From sequence record phage_1: a stretch of 64,000 nucleotides of DNA; one strand, 5' to 3'. This document shows, one piece after another, positions 1-45,508 of the stretch (positions are counted from its first letter, which is position 1; each line of letters starts with the position of its first letter). A model generated the notes under the pieces. The model was not told the DNA's origin. It did no database searches and worked only from the letters and a program-made list of their open reading frames with translations. A program made the translations under genes and the position numbers.

Positions 1-117
1 TATTAAGATCTTAAAACGCGTGCAGGCGCGCGCGTGATCCTTATTAAGAGATCGTGATCGGACGGAAGTCCTAGTTTGGGTACCCTGTGTATTTTTTACG
101 TGGTTTCCCTATCGTGT

Positions 118-327
118 GTTCAGACCACCACTCGATGTCCAAAAACCCATAGCTTCGGTGGTCGCCTCCCTGGTCGGTAGACTCTGACAAGTCGACCCAC
201 AACACCAACCCGTCCGGGGACGGATTTTTATTCCAACGACAAGCTCCACGAAAATCCCCGCAGAGGGACTCACTGCTGTGTGACTCACCGGCTCCTGGAC
301 GCCTACGCCTCGAGCCGGTAATTTTTT
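118..327 (+). ncRNA. Candidate structured ncRNA 1 (~210 nt)
   Basis: No credible ORF. Starts at a TTAC-N15-TGTG motif (96-118). Stems GACCACC 123-129/GGTGGTC 157-163 and ACCGGCTC 287-294/GAGCCGGT 312-319, the latter followed by a T6 run. Structure judged by eye. Confidence 0.55.
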
Positions 328-351
328 GATTACGTGAGTTTGTTGTTATAT

Positions 352-925
352 GCGAATAGCGATTGACCGCGCCAATGGTCCAATCACTTTTAAACCCTGT
401 ACGCTAGGGCTCCAAGTCCTGGGATTGTTACCCAGGACGCTTTTTCGAAAATACCTACCGTGGTGTCTTCGACAAAGCGCAATCTAACACTGCGTGATTT
501 ATTATGTTCTGGAAAACTTTCGCCGTGGAACAGAACCGGTGAGCGTCGGCGGGGATTCCGACAATCACCACCCATTCAGGTACTCGGTAAATAACCGACC
601 TGCCGACGGTGCTACGTCGGGCGTAGTTCGGTTTGCGAGAGTGTCGAGAAAGTCGACTGCGCACCCATGACAAAATCCGAGTTGACCGTGGCAGCGCCAG
701 AGGACTGGGCAGCGGAGAGACGTCGTTGAACTTACCTCCGATAGTTATCGCTGATTCCGCTCTGGCGTCGGGCCAAAACTGATTCGAATTCGGCGTTGCG
801 TCGAAAAGGGGTCTGCGTGTAGAACCGCAGACTTGGGGGATGACTCCAGACGGAGGTGGTCATATCTTGCCGGCTCGGAACAGACGAGAGGGGTGGGTAC
901 TCCCGTTGAGAAACGACGGTACCTG
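352..925 (+). ncRNA. Candidate large structured ncRNA 2 (~570 nt)
   Basis: Starts at TTAC-N15-TATG (330-352). Near-continuous stems: 416-423/431-438, 603-608/615-620, 694-702/760-768, 811-817/826-832 and others. No credible ORF. Confidence 0.6.
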
Positions 926-984
926 GCTGATTAAAATTTACAGATTCTGCGTGAGGTATGATAAACCAAACGGAGAATTAAATC

Positions 985-1560
985 ATGAACTTGTATCGCA
1001 TCGGGTTTTACCGGAACGAGGTACCAGAATCGGTTTTGGTTGTCTTAGCCGAAAACGAGGAGCAGGCCAAATCCTTCTGGCCGGTTAGCGCAGAGCGTAC
1101 AGCGGTTGCGTGCTGCTACGACGGTCCAGTTGCCGCAACGGATGTCGCTGCAGGCGTAGTCCTGAAGATGGGCCGATGGGAAGATTACTCCCATCCCGGT
1201 TTGGAGTTTGTTTCCGAACCTGCCAGACATTCCTGGGAATTTCCCTCAGGCAACACCGAGACGTATTTCGGATTTCAGGTTAAACAACCTTCGACGCTCA
1301 AACTGTACCTGGTGTACAGCGACGCCGCTACCGAAGACTACGTCGATTCCGGAATCATCGTCGGGGCAACAACCCCTGCTGCGGCATTCGCACATTGGGA
1401 CGGTGATAAACCCGGAATCGTTTCGGTCTGTGAGCTACCACTTGAAGCCGGTTTGGTTACGAACATCAAGTGTGAGCAAGGCCAGGAGCTGACTTGGATC
1501 CGCCAGGATTACCTGACGGAAACGACATTCGAGTACACACCGAGGAAGGTGACCCAATGA
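985..1560 (+). CDS. Hypothetical protein with two tandem copies of a small phage domain (paralog of 2283..2525)
   Basis: GGAG SD. Repeats MNLYRI..VLVVLAENEEQA and LKLYLV..IIVGATTPAAA resemble MNLYLL..IIVAAPTEQAA of ORF 2283. Confidence 0.8.
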   Translation: MNLYRIGFYRNEVPESVLVVLAENEEQAKSFWPVSAERTAVACCYDGPVAATDVAAGVVLKMGRWEDYSHPGLEFVSEPARHSWEFPSGNTETYFGFQVKQPSTLKLYLVYSDAATEDYVDSGIIVGATTPAAAFAHWDGDKPGIVSVCELPLEAGLVTNIKCEQGQELTWIRQDYLTETTFEYTPRKVTQ

Positions 1561-2048
1561 CCACGATAGCGTTCGATGGAAAAGTCTTAGCTGCTGACGG
1601 CCAGTTAACCCGTGGGTCGAATATCTGCAACCTGAATACCCAGAAGTTATTCGTCTGTCCTCCTGACGAGGAGTGGTGGATTACCGGTGAACGAATTGTG
1701 GTGTTCGGGGTAAGCGGCGACATCACAGGACAATTGGCCCTGCTGGAAACGGTCCGCTTGAGACCCGGCTACAAGGGGTTAACACAAAGCTCGCAGTTAC
1801 CTGCGAAGATGGATTTTACTTTCCTGATGCTTTTGGCCTCAGGAAAAGCGATAGTCGGTGGGAAGCGTGAAGACGACGTGTCGTTGTGGTGGAGTGAAGC
1901 CACACCACCTCTGGCAACCGGAAGCGGTTACGAGTATGCGTTGGGTGCGATGAAGATGGGCGCGAATGCGGTTCGTGCTGTTGAGATTGCGTCCGAATGC
2001 GATATCTACACCGGTGGTGAGATTAGCACTTACGAACTACGGAGGTGA
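1557..2048 (+). CDS. Ntn-hydrolase / HslV-like peptidase-family protein
   Basis: ATGA overlap with the upstream stop. Begins M-TTIAFDGKVLAADGQ (N-terminal Thr) and has ATGSGYEYALGAM, both typical of the proteasome-beta/HslV fold. True start is 1557, not 1494. Confidence 0.65.
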   Translation: MTTIAFDGKVLAADGQLTRGSNICNLNTQKLFVCPPDEEWWITGERIVVFGVSGDITGQLALLETVRLRPGYKGLTQSSQLPAKMDFTFLMLLASGKAIVGGKREDDVSLWWSEATPPLATGSGYEYALGAMKMGANAVRAVEIASECDIYTGGEISTYELRR

Positions 2049-2140
2049 ATCATGCGGGAGTCAGAAGCACGCAAGCTTGACCCCATCAATCGCCTGCGAT
2101 AACGGGGTAGCGCATCCGTATAAACACGTTAAAGAATTCT

Positions 2141-2216
2141 AGGAAAGTGACGCAATTGGTAGCGTACCGGTCTCCAAAACCGGCTGTTTAGAGTTCGAGT
2201 CTCTACTTTCCTGCCA
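2141..2216 (+). tRNA. trnW: tRNA-Trp (CCA)
   Basis: Full cloverleaf: acceptor AGGAAAG/CTTTCCT, D stem ACGC/GCGT, anticodon arm CCGGT-CTCCAAA-ACCGG (CCA at 2174-2176), T loop TTCGAGT, encoded 3' CCA. Confidence 0.95.
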
Positions 2217-2282
2217 CATTTAGCCAACAAGGCCATGATTCAAAGCAGAATGACACCGAATGTCTAACTGCGGAGAATAATC

Positions 2283-2525
2283 ATGAACTTGTATTTGCTA
2301 GAACGAACTGACGATATCGGGTATGATGAATTTGATTCCATAATCGTGGCGGCTCCTACGGAGCAAGCTGCGTGTGCAATTCCTCCCGACTGTGGTCATT
2401 GGATGGACTGCCGCTGGTTACCGAAAGAGCGCTGGGATGAAGGGCTTACCCTGACCGTTACTCTTATCGGTACTACGCACTATCCTGCTGGGACCGTCGT
2501 TCATGAATCGTTCAATGCTGGCTAA
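2283..2525 (+). CDS. Small hypothetical phage protein (paralog of 985..1560)
   Basis: GGAG SD. The 5' DNA cggagaat(t)aa(a)tcatgaacttgtat is shared with ORF 985. Confidence 0.8.
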   Translation: MNLYLLERTDDIGYDEFDSIIVAAPTEQAACAIPPDCGHWMDCRWLPKERWDEGLTLTVTLIGTTHYPAGTVVHESFNAG

Positions 2526-2704
2526 ACAGTGGGCTTCGGCCCACTAACCCTATTCGAGCCGTGATACTTACTCAGATTGTGCGGGTTGATGTCCCGCATG
2601 AGCCGGTAGCAGCTCAGACCTACGGTAGACCAATAAATCCGTAGCAGCCAGGTACACAAAGCACCAGGTCGCTTGTACAGGATGCTGGGTATCTGACCGG
2701 TCAT
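2522..2704 (-). CDS. Possible 60-aa hypothetical protein
   Basis: GAGGT SD 5' of the ATG on the minus strand; converges on the 2528-2545 hairpin. Confidence 0.35.
   Translation of the reverse strand: MTGQIPSILYKRPGALCTWLLRIYWSTVGLSCYRLMRDINPHNLSKYHGSNRVSGPKPTV
2528..2545. terminator. Hairpin with TTCG loop
   Basis: AGTGGGC-TTCG-GCCCACT directly after the ORF 2283 stop; no T-run. Confidence 0.5.
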
Positions 2705-2732
2705 AACCTCATTCGATACGAGACACGTTTAT

Positions 2733-3105
2733 GCATGAAATACTCCAGTACATCAGGATGTTGATTTCCAACGTCCGGTTCTGGGTATTCAATCATGTTT
2801 GGTTTACAGGCGATGGGTTTTCCCGCAAGGGCCCCACTTACAGACTGGCGTCTCCACGACAACCGTCCCTAGGGGACAGGCAAGCACCGGCCCATTAAGC
2901 CGCCACGCTACGCCTGTAAATCCACAATCTGATAACCGAATGGGATTGAGTTCCCAGTGTTAGGGTGACTATGTGTCACCGTAGGCGCGGTACCTCATAC
3001 GGCCGGTACGCCACGAATGTACGTGATAGCGGGTGGTGCTTGGAGACGCTAAGACCTGACCTTGCGGCCAGGCTCAGAAGAAGAAGTCCATCACCCGCAT
3101 TCAGA
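2733..3105 (+). ncRNA. Candidate structured ncRNA block 3
   Basis: Starts at the G of a TATG (2730-2733). Stems 2756-2763/2769-2776, 2801-2812/2911-2923 (ends ...ATCCA) and 3029-3038/3089-3098, plus a CCC-GCAA-GGG GNRA hairpin. Confidence 0.55.
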
Positions 3106-3300
3106 AATGAATTTAGGTTAATTATTGGAAGTGATGAAATCGTTTACGTGATAACTTAGTAGTATGCAACGAACAATACCAGAGTGACTTTACGAGGTTA
3201 CTGTGGTATATGTCGGTGCTCCGGGCAACGTGTTGCCGTAGATAAGCCCGAGGGAGCTGAGTGCACTAACACACACCGGGATGCACCGGCACCTTACAAT

Positions 3301-3369
3301 GGCTTTGTAGCTCAGGTAGGTAGAGCAACCTCTTCGAGGAAGGTCGCCGGTTCGAGTCCGGTCAAAGCA
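3301..3369 (+). ncRNA. tRNA-like element with shortened anticodon arm
   Basis: Acceptor GCTTTG/CAAAGC, TA at 8-9, D arm GCTC-AGGTAGGTA-GAGC, variable AGGTC and T arm GCCGG-TTCGAGT-CCGGT are canonical. The anticodon arm is only 13 nt (ACCTCTTCGAGGA) versus 17. No encoded CCA. Confidence 0.75.
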
Positions 3370-3370
3370 A

Positions 3371-3452
3371 GAGCAGCGAAGTTAGAGGAATTAACACCCG
3401 ACTCATAATCGGATATTTCGACGGTTCGAATCCGTGCCGTTTGCTCGCCCCA
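3371..3452 (+). pseudogene. Degenerate tRNA-Met/Ile2 (CAT)
   Basis: Anticodon arm CCGA-CTCATAA-TCGG (CAT at 3404-3406) and T loop GGTTCGAATCC are present. The acceptor stem is bulged and U8 is missing. Confidence 0.6.
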
Positions 3453-3790
3453 TTTGTGTTATCCTTATCCCGAAGGCATTCGAAATAAGACGCGTATCCA
3501 CACACGGGTCAAGGGTAACACGAACCACTTCCGCGGTCACCGTGTCCATTGCCGCCTACCTGCATGGGCTGTCCTCCGACACGGTGACTTCGGGCCAACT
3601 TACAGGCCAGGGCCGTTTGGGTTTTTCTTACGCATCCATCCAGAGCCACCTCGCGCCCTAGTCTGTTACCCCTTTTCTGTTCCTGGTTTGCCAACTAAAT
3701 CAATTAAGCCTGGTGCGTTGCCCTGGGAACAGAAAAACTTATTCGGTTACACACCGAACCCACCCACGAGGGATATGTCGTGGACTACCA
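3453..3790 (+). ncRNA. Candidate structured ncRNA block downstream of the tRNA-like pair
   Basis: Two perfect 11-bp stems (3536-3546/3578-3588 and 3673-3683/3726-3736). The overlapping N-terminal extension of ORF 3454 is not credible. Confidence 0.5.
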
Positions 3791-3828
3791 ATAGAAGCAG
3801 CAATAGTAGAAGTAAGAAGGAAAGCAAC

Positions 3829-4650
3829 ATGTTTACAGTTAAACGTGTAATTGATGGTGACCGCATTATTACCGAACATGAAAAAGTTCGTATCGGTGAC
3901 CGTAAGTCTCGTGTATTCCGCGAGGCGTTAAAGATGCTCGAGAACGAGCGCTTCGACATCGTTGTCGATGATGAAAAGTTAGCCCTTAATCCGGGGTTAA
4001 AACGCGTTGCCCCTGATGTGGCTGATCCGAACACCATGCATTTGTCTGACTACTGCAGCTGGTCGCACAGATTATATAAAAGTCAGGTTTATGCACACAC
4101 GTATTTGCGGCAGCTTTTCCCCAACCTTATTATCCCCGATTTGGAAACGGTCGAGGTGTTTAACTGCAACGCACGCGAGTTTATTAGCTACGTGCTAGAT
4201 AATAAGGGCAATGCTATCTTGGTATTGGACACAAATTCCCGCATACCTGATGCTGTGGCTAGCATACGTGGTGAAATCATCGGTTACGGTACTCCCCCAG
4301 AGAAATTAGGCTGGTACAAACCATCTCCTGATAGCGACATGGCGATCATTGTCTACACTCAGGAAGAACTGCAACAAGTCGAATTAGAGCCTGGTCCATC
4401 TATCGAGTTCACTGATGTCCAGGAGCAGTCGCAGTGGATTAACGGTGAGTCTGTTGTTACTGTTTTAAAAGGCGCTCGCCCTGGCGACCGGTCAGTCGAT
4501 GAACTGATTGGCGCAATGTGCATCGAAGAAGAATCTGGATACGATCCTGATAACCAGATCAGTACCGGTGCGTTGTACGAACTGTTTTATAAAGGCGACG
4601 AAGTCTACGTGGTTAACTCTCACGGTAAGACTACCGACGTCCTTCGCTGA
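3829..4650 (+). CDS. Hypothetical protein (273 aa)
   Basis: AAGGA SD before ATG 3829; terminator downstream. Confidence 0.8.
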   Translation: MFTVKRVIDGDRIITEHEKVRIGDRKSRVFREALKMLENERFDIVVDDEKLALNPGLKRVAPDVADPNTMHLSDYCSWSHRLYKSQVYAHTYLRQLFPNLIIPDLETVEVFNCNAREFISYVLDNKGNAILVLDTNSRIPDAVASIRGEIIGYGTPPEKLGWYKPSPDSDMAIIVYTQEELQQVELEPGPSIEFTDVQEQSQWINGESVVTVLKGARPGDRSVDELIGAMCIEEESGYDPDNQISTGALYELFYKGDEVYVVNSHGKTTDVLR

Positions 4651-4740
4651 ATTAGCTAACGCCCAGTAGCTATGTTCCTGACGATTAGCCCTCGTCTGAC
4701 CTTGTAAGACCTTGTAGATTTACATGCCAACACCAGGGAA

Positions 4741-4782
4741 GTCCTCACTCTTCGGAGTGAGGACAACTCTTTTATTTTTTTT
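4741..4782 (+). terminator. Intrinsic terminator
   Basis: GTCCTCACTC-TTCG-GAGTGAGGAC, then a T-rich tract. Confidence 0.85.
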
Positions 4783-4800
4783 TGTATCCCAAATATTCAC

Positions 4801-4816
4801 AGATAGATATTACCTA
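4801..4816 (+). promoter_or_regulatory. Class A phage promoter motif (AGATAGATATTAYCT)
   Basis: One of 8 intergenic or upstream copies of the motif; precedes ORF 4875. Confidence 0.7.
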
Positions 4817-4874
4817 AGTGAGATGAGAAAGCCTCATCTGAATTTCCCCAACTCGACTATAAAAGGTAAGCATC

Positions 4875-5825
4875 ATGTACAGACCAAGTAATCCTAGTGC
4901 TATTGAAGGATTAAACCAGGATGGCTTCAGCCTCGCAGAAGCAACCCGCATTCGACCTTTCTTACCTCGCAGATTCTTCCCTTTCGGTTCGTTATACAGA
5001 ACGAATTTCGACGCTTGGGAAGCGATACGTGCTGTAAAAGATGCACTACAGTACAAGAACTTCGAATTCCGATTTGTTTTCAAATGGGGCAACGGCGAAT
5101 TGCTCCACCACTTCGGATTCCAACAGAACGAGTTCATTGAGTATACCTCACCTACGTACCACACCAGGTTCTTAAGTATCGAATTCGTTCGCCATTTCGG
5201 CGATGCACTCTTTACGGAACGGGCTACAGATGAAAACCACGGACGTAGGCTGATGTTAACGAACGGCGCACTGCGCATCAAGATGAATCGTTTACGGGAA
5301 GCGTATAACCAGCTTATCAATCCTGAACCGGTAATGTTTCCAACTGTAGCTGATTTGAACATTACACCGCTCCAGTTGCCTGTGGATGTGGATAGACCGA
5401 TTCTGGCAATCCACGCTCTCCAGGCAGGCTATGCAAACTGGTATAAAGAGCACAGTCTCCCGAACACCAGATTGAACATCGCACCGTTTGAGTTGTGCCT
5501 GTTCTTAACGTTACGCAAACAGCTCGAGCCAGAAAACTTAGACTTACGTTATCTGGCTAAAACAGATAGCGGTAATTACTACCCAACGACCTGGATGCTG
5601 GCGGCTGTACTACCCGGCGGTGAAATTATCGGTAACCCAGTCACCGATGTTCAACAGTTACCATCACCGTTAGCACCACCGAAAGATTCAATCTATCCGT
5701 ACGCTTCGTGGTACGCGAGCAGTATTGGCGTGAGATGGTTAATGTTACACGTTCCTGAAGAGGTCTATAATTTATTCCCGCATGAGCAATGGCTCCGTGC
5801 GTATGAAAATCGGTTTGGTTACTAG
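4875..5825 (+). CDS. Hypothetical protein (316 aa)
   Basis: AAGGT SD, long ORF, flanked by a promoter motif and a terminator. Confidence 0.85.
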   Translation: MYRPSNPSAIEGLNQDGFSLAEATRIRPFLPRRFFPFGSLYRTNFDAWEAIRAVKDALQYKNFEFRFVFKWGNGELLHHFGFQQNEFIEYTSPTYHTRFLSIEFVRHFGDALFTERATDENHGRRLMLTNGALRIKMNRLREAYNQLINPEPVMFPTVADLNITPLQLPVDVDRPILAIHALQAGYANWYKEHSLPNTRLNIAPFELCLFLTLRKQLEPENLDLRYLAKTDSGNYYPTTWMLAAVLPGGEIIGNPVTDVQQLPSPLAPPKDSIYPYASWYASSIGVRWLMLHVPEEVYNLFPHEQWLRAYENRFGY

Positions 5826-5907: not shown

Positions 5908-6324
5908 ATGATTACGCAGTGCTCATACCAGACGCAAGATTTATTTAAAGCATTGGAAGAAAATAAGCTACCCACGACTTTAAGACCGCAGTGCAGTTAT
6001 TCAAGAATGCTTGCAAGTGAGGTCTTTCCGGTGCTAATGCAGTTGCCTCAATTCCAACCGTGGCTCGACTCGCTAGATGTGGTAGATGTTGTGGCTATCT
6101 ACACTGGGTCAGACACACCAACAATAAATACAAGCGAGTGTTTATCCCGTAGCGAATCGTCGGCGATAAATGAAATGCCGCAGCTAATGCCTTCTTTATT
6201 CGATTCGATGTGCGCTGCAGTTATGCAGAAACGACTACCTTATGAGGAAGTATTCGCCATTGTGTTAGACAGCATCCACGCAATGAATTATAAACACTAT
6301 AAAACCCTCGGAACCTTACACTGA
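5908..6324 (+). CDS. Hypothetical protein
   Basis: GGAGG SD before ATG 5908. Confidence 0.75.
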   Translation: MITQCSYQTQDLFKALEENKLPTTLRPQCSYSRMLASEVFPVLMQLPQFQPWLDSLDVVDVVAIYTGSDTPTINTSECLSRSESSAINEMPQLMPSLFDSMCAAVMQKRLPYEEVFAIVLDSIHAMNYKHYKTLGTLH

Positions 6325-6391: not shown

Positions 6392-6781
6392 ATGAAAAAC
6401 AAACTGCGTCCGCTGGACGTGATTATGGCGCATCCGGATACCCTCAAGAAAATTAAAGTGGTCAATGAACTTGACCGTGGTCTCCTGGATACTATTCAAT
6501 GGGGTTTTACTTTCCACCCCGATGAAGAGAACAACACGCGTCAATTAGATGTCTGCGACGGCGTAGAAATTGATTGGTCTTCTAACGAAGGCTTCAACGA
6601 TGTCGTCGATTATGTCAAACAAGCCACCGTTCCACCTGTGTTTCCCGTAGCTGGTTTAGCGGAACACACAATTTCTCTCCGCCGACTGGTTAACGCTCAA
6701 CCAGAAATCGTGCGTGAAGGCGAGGCGTGGACGTCAGGCATTACCCATCATCTTAAGGATGTGCTGGGTGTTGCCGGTTAA
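6392..6781 (+). CDS. Hypothetical protein (129 aa)
   Basis: AAGGAG SD; TTAC-N15-TGTA motif at 6330-6352. Confidence 0.8.
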   Translation: MKNKLRPLDVIMAHPDTLKKIKVVNELDRGLLDTIQWGFTFHPDEENNTRQLDVCDGVEIDWSSNEGFNDVVDYVKQATVPPVFPVAGLAEHTISLRRLVNAQPEIVREGEAWTSGITHHLKDVLGVAG

Positions 6782-40950: not shown

Positions 40951-41808
40951 ATGATTGATATTTATACCGACTATGCGGCTGTATTGACAGTCAACCGTCA
41001 CGAAGGTCGTGCAGCACCGATGCTAGATTTAGTGACGCTCGGTATGGATTACGGTTACGATGTGGCGTTATCCGATGTTTATAGCAACCCGTTGTCTGAC
41101 CCTGCGGACGAAACTGTTCGTCTGGAATCCATTATCGTGAAGGTAGCGGTTGGGTTAGGCAACCGCCTCGGTATCGGACTTAATCCACAAATCGTCTTCC
41201 AGAAACCGAAAGAAACCGTACGTATCCTTCACGGTGTGTTGGAAGCCTTCGAAGAGTTCGAAGACAGTGATGCCCTTTACGGGATTGTCTCCTCTGGTGA
41301 GACACCAGAGTATATCCTGGAGAACATGTGTCGTTATGTTTACGGTGACGAAAACCTGCACTTCGAAGACCTGATTACTGTTGTCAGCCCACGCGTGCTT
41401 ACCGTGATGGAAAACTTCTTAGCGGCAGAGTCGTTGGAAAGCCAGAAAAGAAATGGCGATGATGAGCGCCAAGAGCGTATCGTCACTTACTTGCGGTTGT
41501 TCCCTGAGAACCCGTCAGCGTTTGTCTTTATGAATCTGCCTGCTGAACCAGACTTAACAGTGGTGCAACAATCGTTAGAATTTCGCGTAGAAGACATTAG
41601 CGAAATTGATTTGCTGACGATGTATGCGGTAGGTTTATCGATTATTCCTCATGCGGAGTTTGACGGGGCTTACGGTGACTTAGAAAAGAACCTTGCCTTG
41701 TTGAACGTCGACAACGTCCCGCCTGGAGAAATCTTGCGGAAAGGATTGGAAGCGTTGAAAGTCATATACGCTAGTGGGGTCGCGGAGGTAGATGATGAAC
41801 AAGATTGA
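40951..41808 (+). CDS. Conserved hypothetical, probably virion protein
   Basis: Long ORF after a terminator; TATG upstream. Confidence 0.7.
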   Translation: MIDIYTDYAAVLTVNRHEGRAAPMLDLVTLGMDYGYDVALSDVYSNPLSDPADETVRLESIIVKVAVGLGNRLGIGLNPQIVFQKPKETVRILHGVLEAFEEFEDSDALYGIVSSGETPEYILENMCRYVYGDENLHFEDLITVVSPRVLTVMENFLAAESLESQKRNGDDERQERIVTYLRLFPENPSAFVFMNLPAEPDLTVVQQSLEFRVEDISEIDLLTMYAVGLSIIPHAEFDGAYGDLEKNLALLNVDNVPPGEILRKGLEALKVIYASGVAEVDDEQD

Positions 41809-45438: not shown

Positions 45439-45508
45439 GGTCTACTCTCAAATATGGTGTCTGCTATACTGATTTGTGGGTAACGTATTTTCTAAAAGGA
45501 ACGTCTAA

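Follow-up and report, generated by a model that had tools for sequence, protein, structure and literature searches.

What does a jumbo phage keep in a long stretch of its genome that carries no gene? The question is raised by the left end of the window analyzed here, a stretch of 64,000 nucleotides (nt) identical in sequence to Escherichia phage vB_EcoM_Lh1B (OK428535.1; Lh1B below), a member of the SPN3US-like genus Seoulvirus, with base 1 of the window corresponding to base 1 of the record. SPN3US itself is counted among the phages demonstrated to form a phage nucleus (PMC13282480). An initial annotation had proposed that bases 96-925 hold two promoter-driven non-coding RNAs, which we call RNA-A (block 1, 118-327) and RNA-B (block 2, 352-931), both on the plus strand. 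The comparisons reported below indicate that block 2 is a real, conserved, plus-strand, multi-helix RNA of ~580 nt. The stretch was correctly described as free of credible open reading frames (ORFs), since bases 1-984 contain none, annotated or otherwise, and the gap is in fact 1,757 nt long, joining record positions 239428-240200 to window positions 1-984, so that bases 96-925 occupy its right half. The last gene upstream, at the end of the record, ends at 239427; the first annotated gene downstream (985-1560) is followed by an HslV-family peptidase gene (1557-2048; phrog_1040) and a tRNA-Trp gene (2141-2216). The position at a "genome start" is a mere convention of the record, as the SPLA records have this locus at 11.4 kb, phage 1252 has it at 193 kb and other records at further positions. 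The gap is syntenic in at least five phage lineages, measuring 1.3-2.1 kb and carrying few annotated ORFs, short or doubtful ones: it was found in Seoulviruses (SPLA5c, SPFM4, SPLA1a, SPAsTU, and pEa_SNUABM_29, SNU29 below), Erskineviruses (phiEaH2 and Asesino), Machinaviruses (Caitlin, ChrisDB, Huxley, and SNUABM_9, SNU9 below), Wellingtonviruses (Kwan and SNUABM_11) and a 222-kb circular "plasmid" of E. coli strain 98232 with jumbo-phage synteny. Genes of phrog_8136 and phrog_9731 always precede it, at times together with one or two extra ORFs.

Compensatory changes among homologs from related jumbo phages, by which the initial annotation had expected a real RNA to be recognized, were found throughout block 2. 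In blastn comparisons, SPAsTU (74%) and SNUABM_29 (71%) align across the whole region, the Erskineviruses retain 685-977 at 78%, and the Machina- and Wellingtonviruses retain shorter cores; across genera, the RNA core keeps ~79% nucleotide identity, against 48-60% for the flanking protein. An exact-motif scan of IMG/VR and metagenomes, seeded with a 29-mer from the 3' part of the RNA, contributed nine further relatives, and three seed matches (L032, L040 and L048) were discarded as chance hits with a covariance model. For the 3' part (673-931), 21 sequences were aligned with MAFFT and folded by RNAalifold without fitting them to a model (alignment A1). This revealed 40 pairs, 17 of them with compensatory changes; 96.4% of the cells were paired, compared with 35-45% after sliding the 3' partners by 1-3 columns, and the covariation score of 0.365 contrasted with at most 0.098 in the slid controls and was reached by none of 500 shuffles. 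A second, independent MAFFT alignment of nine Seoul- and Erskinevirus sequences over 352-694 (A3) retained 55 pairs, 18 of them compensatory, with 97.3% of the cells paired against 36-52% when slid; many of its changes stem from a single Erskine lineage and therefore represent few independent events. In a model-fitted alignment (A5), the corresponding values were 95.6% and 34-44%.

The stems that had been read from the letters all exist (123-129/157-163, 287-294/312-319, 416-423/431-438, 603-608/615-620, 694-702/760-768 and 811-817/826-832), and five of six pairs covary in A1 for the helix 694-702/760-768, which corresponds to the long-range helix 690-699/763-774 of the alignment. Their density, which had been taken as a special feature, did not hold up as one, the folding-energy z-score being no better than the coding background of the same genome. 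The z-score of 352-931 was -2.9 to -3.0, a low value in itself, but 13 coding control windows of 580 nt scored similarly (mean -2.55, standard deviation 1.56); values of -1.5 and -1.4 were obtained for 118-330 and 673-931, and 352-925 gave -2.9 on the plus and -2.75 on the minus strand. The reality of the stems is demonstrated by covariation rather than by energy or stem density. Strand specificity was assessed from conserved G:U pairs, which occur at four positions of A1 in 17, 21, 16 and 15 sequences, respectively. Together with the GNRA loops described below, these pairs imply that the structure exists solely in the plus-strand RNA and not in its complement or in duplex DNA. Block 2 hence has what is expected of a structured RNA gene in general, namely compensatory changes above controls, strand asymmetry and no coding signature. 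By our own reading, the E. coli 98232 lineage would provide an independent confirmation of two RNA-B helices: its long-range helix is GCCUCUGGGG/CCCCAGAGGU where Lh1B has GCGCCAGAG/CUCUGGCGU, the strands being nearly fully swapped, and its terminal stem exhibits G-C to C-G swaps.

A covariance model of the 3' 156 positions (R1) detected exactly one copy per related genome, at 91-163 bits, and no further copy in 114 kb of Lh1B (50 kb to the left of the record end plus the window) nor any in the Derbicusvirus loci. The Derbicusviruses (CR5, Derbicus and Phobos) keep the flanking genes and a ~0.5-kb AT-rich gap in which the RNA was not found. Similar sequence was absent from E. coli genomes except in the phage-like "plasmid", and a scan of representative bacterial genomes returned one chance seed match only. 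Because the Derbicusviruses lack the RNA and bacterial genomes have no matches beyond that "plasmid", the RNA-B family is, as far as these sequence searches indicate, restricted to one clade of Enterobacterales jumbo phages. The 222-kb element, from a urinary E. coli isolate (NZ_CP173450.1, 148309-155375; L049), has the entire syntenic locus, comprising a structural gene, a phrog_8136-like gene, a 2.1-kb gap with the RNA (R1, 91 bits), a 501-nt ORF whose initial codons (MTTIVF) are similar to those of the HslV-like gene, and a tRNA gene. It looks like a jumbo-phage genome deposited as a plasmid.

In the 5' half of RNA-B (spanning 416-479 on the plus strand), the alignments place a hairpin at 416-438 followed by a U-tract helix, CGCUUUUUCGAA (438-449) with UUCGACAAAGCG (468-479), that surrounds a further hairpin at 451-466. 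In a 15-sequence alignment covering all four genera (A6), the UUU:AAA pairing is present in 15/15 sequences, and covariation is seen in the enclosed hairpin as well as at both ends of the helix. The hairpin 416-438, CUUUUUCGAGA and a CCUAACAC box are conserved in sequence in most lineages, the box being lost in the Wellington-like phages. Because the U-run pairs with a conserved A-tract in all genera, we read 352-930 as one RNA: the hairpin and its U-run are probably part of the mature fold, and the RNA continues through them as one molecule of ~580 nt. Farther on, a helix of GGUACUCGG with CCGAGU(UG)ACC (579-687, plus strand; helix 8 of A3) encloses hypervariable hairpins at 588-676, the stem 603-608/615-620 sitting in this hypervariable patch; an equivalent helix could be drawn, in our own reading, in the Machinaviruses.

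The 3' half is built around the long-range helix 690-699/763-774 (690-774, plus strand; helices 2-3 of A1), in which six of nine pairs covary and which surrounds the conserved loop GAACUUACC (728-736). Two hairpins follow at 789-805 and 811-832, with three of seven and six of seven covarying pairs, respectively, in the model-fitted alignment. The next element (844-861) consists, in the alignments, of a variable hairpin, CUCC/GGAG, and a conserved (G)GAGGUG(A/G)UC(C), which in 19/25 homologs, although not in all lineages, is complementary over 9-13 nt to the 3' tail of 16S ribosomal RNA. Runs of at least 9 nt of this anti-Shine-Dalgarno complement, GGAGGUGAUCC, are expected by chance about once per 13 kb; the run has just 7 nt in phiEaH2 and the Huxley type, and the E. 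coli 98232 lineage, as we read it, has a degenerate form of the motif, which thus offers a weak lead to function. Adjoining it is the 29-mer UCUUG.C.GCUCGGAA(C)AGACGAGAGGGG (865-893), made of almost invariant columns in A1 and in alignment A4, with a helix 874-877/885-888 that is invariant in A1. The RNA closes with a terminal 14-bp hairpin (891-928), nine of whose 14 pairs covary and whose tetraloop (908-911) is always of the GNRA type (GAGA, GUGA, GCGA or GGGA). The long-range pairs 686-689/870-873 and 371-374/689-692, proposed by RNAalifold, were rejected, as they conflict with better-supported helices. In Kwan, Wellington and a metagenome sequence (L022), a 634-nt cassette with an ORF for an HNH endonuclease lies inside the RNA gene (in Kwan, L010:2369-3002), ~75 nt from the 3' end of the RNA, at the 844-861 element and next to the invariant 29-mer. 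Homing endonucleases usually target highly conserved sequence. A weak Rfam hit to int-alpA (31 bits, threshold 35.8) was detected just upstream of the HNH ORF (L010:2375-2440).

Both blocks were said to be headed by a TTAC-N15-T(A/G)TG motif (96-118 and 330-352). Both copies are present, and the motif is enriched and behaves as a promoter class. A third copy lies at 938-960, just upstream of the ORF at 985. The window contains 10 matches to TTAC-N15-TRTG, against 4.1 expected and a number reached in 0/100 shuffles, and five of the 10 are located in the two stretches without coding sequence within the first 3.3 kb. A relaxed form, T(T/C)AC-N15-T(A/G)T(G/A) after a T-run, precedes the genes at 5908, 6392, 11920 and 24465. 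In the 114 kb searched, 10 of 26 hits to the motif lie within the 8.5% of the DNA that a crude call assigns as intergenic (4.5-fold enrichment); the T-rich subset (n=6) is entirely on the plus strand, with predicted start sites 26-39 nt upstream of ORFs. The first copy, promoter P1 (91-118, plus strand), has a T-run followed by TTAC-N15-TGTG and a putative start site at G118; its TTTTTTACGTGG and TGTG are invariant across all Seoulvirus lineages, and P1-class motifs stand 26-39 nt upstream of the ORFs at 6392, 11920 and L047:31995. Promoter P2 (330-352, plus strand; TTAC-N15-TATG, putative start site at G352) is kept in Seoul- and Erskineviruses, the latter having equivalents of both P1 and P2. 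Promoter P3 (938-960, plus strand; TTAC-N15-TATG), 25 nt upstream of the ORF at 985, was found in most lineages and is missing in SPAsTU, SNU29, SNU9, Huxley and the metagenome sequence mgL036.

The non-virion RNA polymerase of phiKZ provides a precedent for such sites: in its late promoters T-3ATG+1 overlaps the start site, and its middle promoters have a weak AT-rich motif near -24 (PMC7598289, PMC5312081). The Lh1B motif similarly ends in T(A/G)T(G/A), carries a T-run and TTAC ~20-27 nt upstream and stands 26-39 nt before start codons, whereas the Lh1B clade differs in its fixed N15 spacer and conserved T(T/C)AC(G) element. Sequence, enrichment and placement before genes all agree with a chimallivirus non-virion RNA polymerase promoter of the phiKZ type, with start sites deduced from the motif. 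Judged by these features, TTAC-N15-T(A/G)TG is a genuine recurrent class that behaves as a phage promoter, and T-run-T(T/C)AC-N15-T(A/G)T(G/A) is likely the middle/late promoter consensus of the SPN3US clade, for which no published consensus was found in the literature searched. A different recurrent motif, AGATAGATATTATCT, lies upstream of the genes at 4875, 7810, 16806, 25251 and 30406 on the plus and 16599 and 30339 on the minus strand, some of them divergent pairs, and is probably the early promoter for the virion RNA polymerase in the Lh1B clade. On reading the sequence, this ~10-nt conserved AT-rich element was not seen in 96-925.

Block 1 is less well defined. Alignment A2, in which about three independent sequences could be aligned, RNAalifold and a terminator scan outline for RNA-A (118-327, plus strand) a hairpin at 123-163, a large hairpin at 165-223 followed by T5 (225-229), and a hairpin at 287-319 followed by T6 (322-327), the last being the hairpin and T6 with which block 1 had been said to end. 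The stem 123-129/157-163 is invariant in Seoulviruses, the stem of the large hairpin shifts between lineages from U:G to U:A to A:U, and compensatory changes are present in the hairpin before T6. Over these few independent sequences, four pairs covary and the covariation term is +1.56, which amounts to no net covariation. RNA-A has the motifs GACAAGTYGACC, CACGACA and CTGCTGTGTG in common with Erskine- and Machinaviruses and otherwise shares little with them. The Machinaviruses lack P2 together with the ~85 nt after it, and GCUGUGU, which forms the end of RNA-A in Seoulviruses, adjoins the 416-type hairpin there, so that both blocks are contiguous behind a single promoter. Of the claim of two promoter-driven RNAs, the part concerning block 2 as a conserved strand-specific RNA therefore stands, whereas covariation is underpowered for block 1 and the second promoter is not universal. 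G+C-rich hairpins followed by a U-run, the signature of intrinsic terminators, do occur here: the terminator scan found 210-223 with T5 and 416-438 with T5, and 287-319 with T6 was recognized by inspection and alignment. Since the U-run at 441-445 belongs to a conserved helix as well, its role in termination is uncertain. Taken by its sequence, RNA-A is a probable small RNA unit ahead of RNA-B, running from 118 to ~229 or 327. A complementarity between the two RNAs, formed by the inverted repeat AAUCCCCGC (254-262) and GCGGGGAUU (550-558), was rejected, since in our reading of the alignments SNU29 and the Erskineviruses do not share it.

The absence of any known family, which the initial annotation had suspected while recalling the ROOL, GOLLD and OLE classes, was borne out. 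Rfam 15 gave no match at the locus, neither in window 1-5000 (E up to 10) nor in a scan of eight homologous loci (E up to 5), seven other lineages likewise giving none, and the covariance models for ROOL, GOLLD, OLE, HEARO and raiA had no match in Lh1B or the homologous loci. Group I and group II introns were set aside, with no Rfam hit and no interrupted ORF on either side, as were RNase P RNA, tmRNA, SRP RNA and 6S RNA, for which neither covariance models nor ARAGORN gave a match; two look-alikes of the conserved regions I and V of RNase P RNA, GGAAAGAC and AGAACC, proved on our inspection to be in the wrong order. No riboswitch model of Rfam matched in any of these lineages. A T-box leader was likewise rejected (no hit to RF00230), the resemblance of GGGUGGGUAC lying within a covarying stem and not being conserved, and a U1-like resemblance seen by eye (ACUUACCU) had neither Rfam support nor conservation across lineages. 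No earlier description of RNA-B was found in the literature searched, the tables of Fremin et al. 2023 (more than 8,000 unnamed short IMG/VR candidates) not having been compared.

On this basis we favor, as a fairly probable reading, that 352 to ~930 is a stand-alone, plus-strand structured non-coding RNA of ~580 nt that follows the probable small RNA-A. The phage non-virion RNA polymerase would transcribe both from TTAC-N15-TATG promoters. RNA-B would then fold into two domains, the 5' one with a hairpin whose trailing U-run is held in a helix, and the 3' one built on the long-range helix and ending in the almost invariant 29-mer and the GNRA-capped hairpin. It would most likely act in trans as a folded RNA that contacts a protein or another RNA by means of those unpaired segments that are invariant, namely GAACUUACC, GUGUAGAAC, UUGGGGGA, the 29-mer and GCUGA. 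Several observations weigh against this picture. Folding energy had to be rejected as evidence, given that coding controls score alike, and about four independent lineages supply the covariation seen in the 5' half. The hairpin 416-438 with its U-run may double as a partial terminator and could then end many transcripts, and the Machinaviruses do without P2. No recognizable terminator follows the 3' hairpin, so that RNA-B may be the 5' part of a longer mRNA, and in the five lineages without P3 a ribosome-binding site lies within ~25-35 nt after that hairpin. Finally, Kwan and Wellington tolerate the 634-nt HNH cassette within the RNA.

The missing terminator and the nearby ribosome-binding site lend themselves to another view, in which RNA-B is a long structured 5' leader acting in cis, for instance as a riboswitch or protein-binding operator, on the downstream operon of the HslV-like peptidase, tRNA-Trp and their neighbors. 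The terminal hairpin without a terminator after it fits such a leader, as does the ribosome-binding site with an ATG ~25-35 nt past the hairpin in SPAsTU, SNU29, SNU9, Huxley and mgL036, and the HslV-like gene is the next ORF in SPN3US, phiEaH2 and L020. However, the gene directly after the RNA may be the HslV-like peptidase, a 191-aa ORF, a 129-aa ORF or a member of a Machina/Wellington ORF family, that is, at least four types, unrelated except for a link between the last two. There is thus no consistent downstream family as a riboswitch or cis leader would have, P3 intervenes between RNA and ORF in most lineages, and the ribosome-binding site is not involved in the invariant segments. A linkage to the HslV-like peptidase was specifically rejected, as this gene is widespread in unrelated phages that have no RNA-B. 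Because the downstream genes vary and a promoter mostly intervenes, a stand-alone RNA acting in trans is favored, and we regard the cis leader as unlikely, albeit with a real share of the probability.

A less probable arrangement, to which we give a small chance, replaces the two RNAs by several short promoter/terminator units (118-229, 118-327 and 352-446) and a separate RNA starting near a conserved UAUG at 503-506. The terminator-like hairpins with U-runs at 225-229, 322-327 and 441-445 speak for it, and T(A/T)(G/T)TATGTTC at 499-509 and CCTAACAC at 483-490 are kept in the Seoul, Erskine and Machina lineages; phiKZ late promoters conserve only TATG at the start site (PMC7598289). Yet the U-run at 441-445 is the one that pairs with the conserved A-tract in every genus, in a helix with covarying ends, and the hairpin and CUUUUUCGAGA are conserved more than a terminator requires. 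In our own count, moreover, TAAC and TATG are separated by 14 to 21 nt depending on the sequence, whereas the promoter class has a fixed N15.

The locus could also serve at the level of DNA, which we consider very improbable: it would be an origin of replication or a packaging site, with transcripts that act as primers or activators beside the AT-rich center of the gap. This view draws on a ~110-nt, partly palindromic block of pure A/T that all genera conserve and that lies ~100 nt upstream of P1, and T7 and T4 origins pair promoters with AT-rich elements. The pairing of RNA-B, however, relies on G:U pairs and GNRA loops that are meaningful only in plus-strand RNA, the Derbicusviruses have the AT-rich gap without the RNA, and GC skew neither switches at the locus nor gives an origin signal there. 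Alternating-GC blocks, ACGCGTGCGCGTGCGCACAC and ACGCGTGCAGGCGCGCGCGTG, and GATC-rich arms border the A/T block itself (record 240090-240200, L007:3891-4001, plus window 1-60), which is larger in the E. coli 98232 lineage, persists as an AT-rich gap in Derbicusvirus CR5 and could be a DNA unwinding element or origin; an origin at this place would not on its own account for RNA-B. That the stretch is a decayed or unrecognized protein-coding gene, or a set of chance stems, is effectively refuted already: although minus-strand stop-free stretches reach 134-159 codons in some strains and coding DNA has energy z-scores just as good, these longest open stretches have no start codons and are broken in sister strains (SPFM4, SPLA1a and SNU29), few indels are divisible by three (7/26 against SPAsTU and 7/31 against SNUABM_29), substitutions display no three-base periodicity, Pfam and PHROGs returned no hits, and covariation lies far above controls. 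A small ORF beginning with the invariant UUG (867) was rejected as well, as a 1-nt indel within the otherwise invariant 29-mer shifts the frame between lineages and thereby rules out a conserved peptide there.

If RNA-B is the stand-alone RNA favored above, it may, as a tentative extension, represent the first member of a new class of large ornate RNAs that is specific to one clade of the nucleus-forming jumbo phages of Enterobacterales. Such an RNA would be produced in the phage nucleus and act in trans; it might, for instance, assemble itself into particles as ROOL and GOLLD do, or bind tRNA, ribosomes, or an export or defense factor. With ROOL and GOLLD (RF03087 and RF01998), RNA-B shares the 500-800 nt size class, many helices and junctions, a function not evident from sequence, the association with phages or prophages and a location near tRNA genes: tRNA-Trp lies 1.2 kb downstream in Lh1B and ~0.6 kb in SPN3US, tRNA remnants occur at 3301-3445 in Lh1B, and tRNA clusters stand downstream in SPAsTU and SNU29. 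It differs from both in matching neither model in Lh1B or the seven homologous loci (E up to 5-10), and in its hosts; they are found mainly in Firmicutes and relatives, whereas RNA-B occurs in Enterobacterales jumbo phages. The stable RNAs species 1 and 2 of phage T4 (rnaC and rnaD), of ~120-140 nt, lie in a tRNA cluster and mature from the precursor transcript of the tRNAs. RNA-B resembles them as a phage-encoded non-coding RNA beside phage tRNA genes, but has about four times their size and a promoter motif to itself, and no sequence relation is expected. The non-coding RNAs of phiKZ, detected by Grad-seq and ONT-cappable-seq, measure 70-200 nt and are defined by transcript data (PMC10914365). 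They too belong to a nucleus-forming jumbo phage, and many of them arise where a phage promoter is followed by a premature terminator in a 5' untranslated region, an arrangement also seen at 118-229 and 352-446 (PMC10914365); unlike these transcript-based candidates, RNA-B is known from strong covariation over ~580 nt, and blastn detected no sequence similarity to Pseudomonas phages.

Bacteria and phages have so far yielded very few RNAs longer than 400 nt that adopt complex conserved folds, and the majority of these proved to be ribozymes or unusual particles. Were RNA-B a new class of this kind, large-RNA biology would become testable in a tractable laboratory phage of E. coli or Salmonella. 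The phages that carry it grow on laboratory strains of both hosts, amber mutants of SPN3US have been collected and sequenced, and published work describes antisense-oligomer knock-down in phages that resist genetic manipulation; RNA-B is also single-copy in the 114 kb of Lh1B searched and small enough for deletion. In the nucleus-forming group, transcription takes place inside the phage nucleus, away from ribosomes, and RNA must exit for translation.

Additional features were observed around the locus. The left half of the gap (L007:3229-3860, record 239428-240059) is conserved across Seoulviruses and has hairpins with compensatory changes, such as GTAACCGACA/TGTCGGTTAC, which becomes GTATCCGACA/TGTCGGATAC in SNU29, as well as two copies of TTTTTTAACCA; it may hold more small RNAs. 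The first gene after RNA-B in Lh1B (985-1560), a 191-aa ORF with no family match, is absent from SPN3US and SEGD1, in which P3 runs directly into the HslV-like peptidase gene, and is a recent gain or loss of a gene just after the RNA. Scattered N letters occur in intergenic DNA at ~40990-41010 and 45440-45500, and the public record also has n's at L007:3259-3268. A second gene-poor stretch, at 2525-3830, carries the same promoter class at 3144-3166 and 3190-3212, followed by two degenerate tRNA genes, one at 3301-3370 (Rfam tRNA, 40.9 bits, with ARAGORN silent) and one at 3373-3445 (21.5 bits). In the place of these degenerate genes, SPAsTU has intact genes for tRNA-Tyr, Glu, Asp, Ile and Gln.

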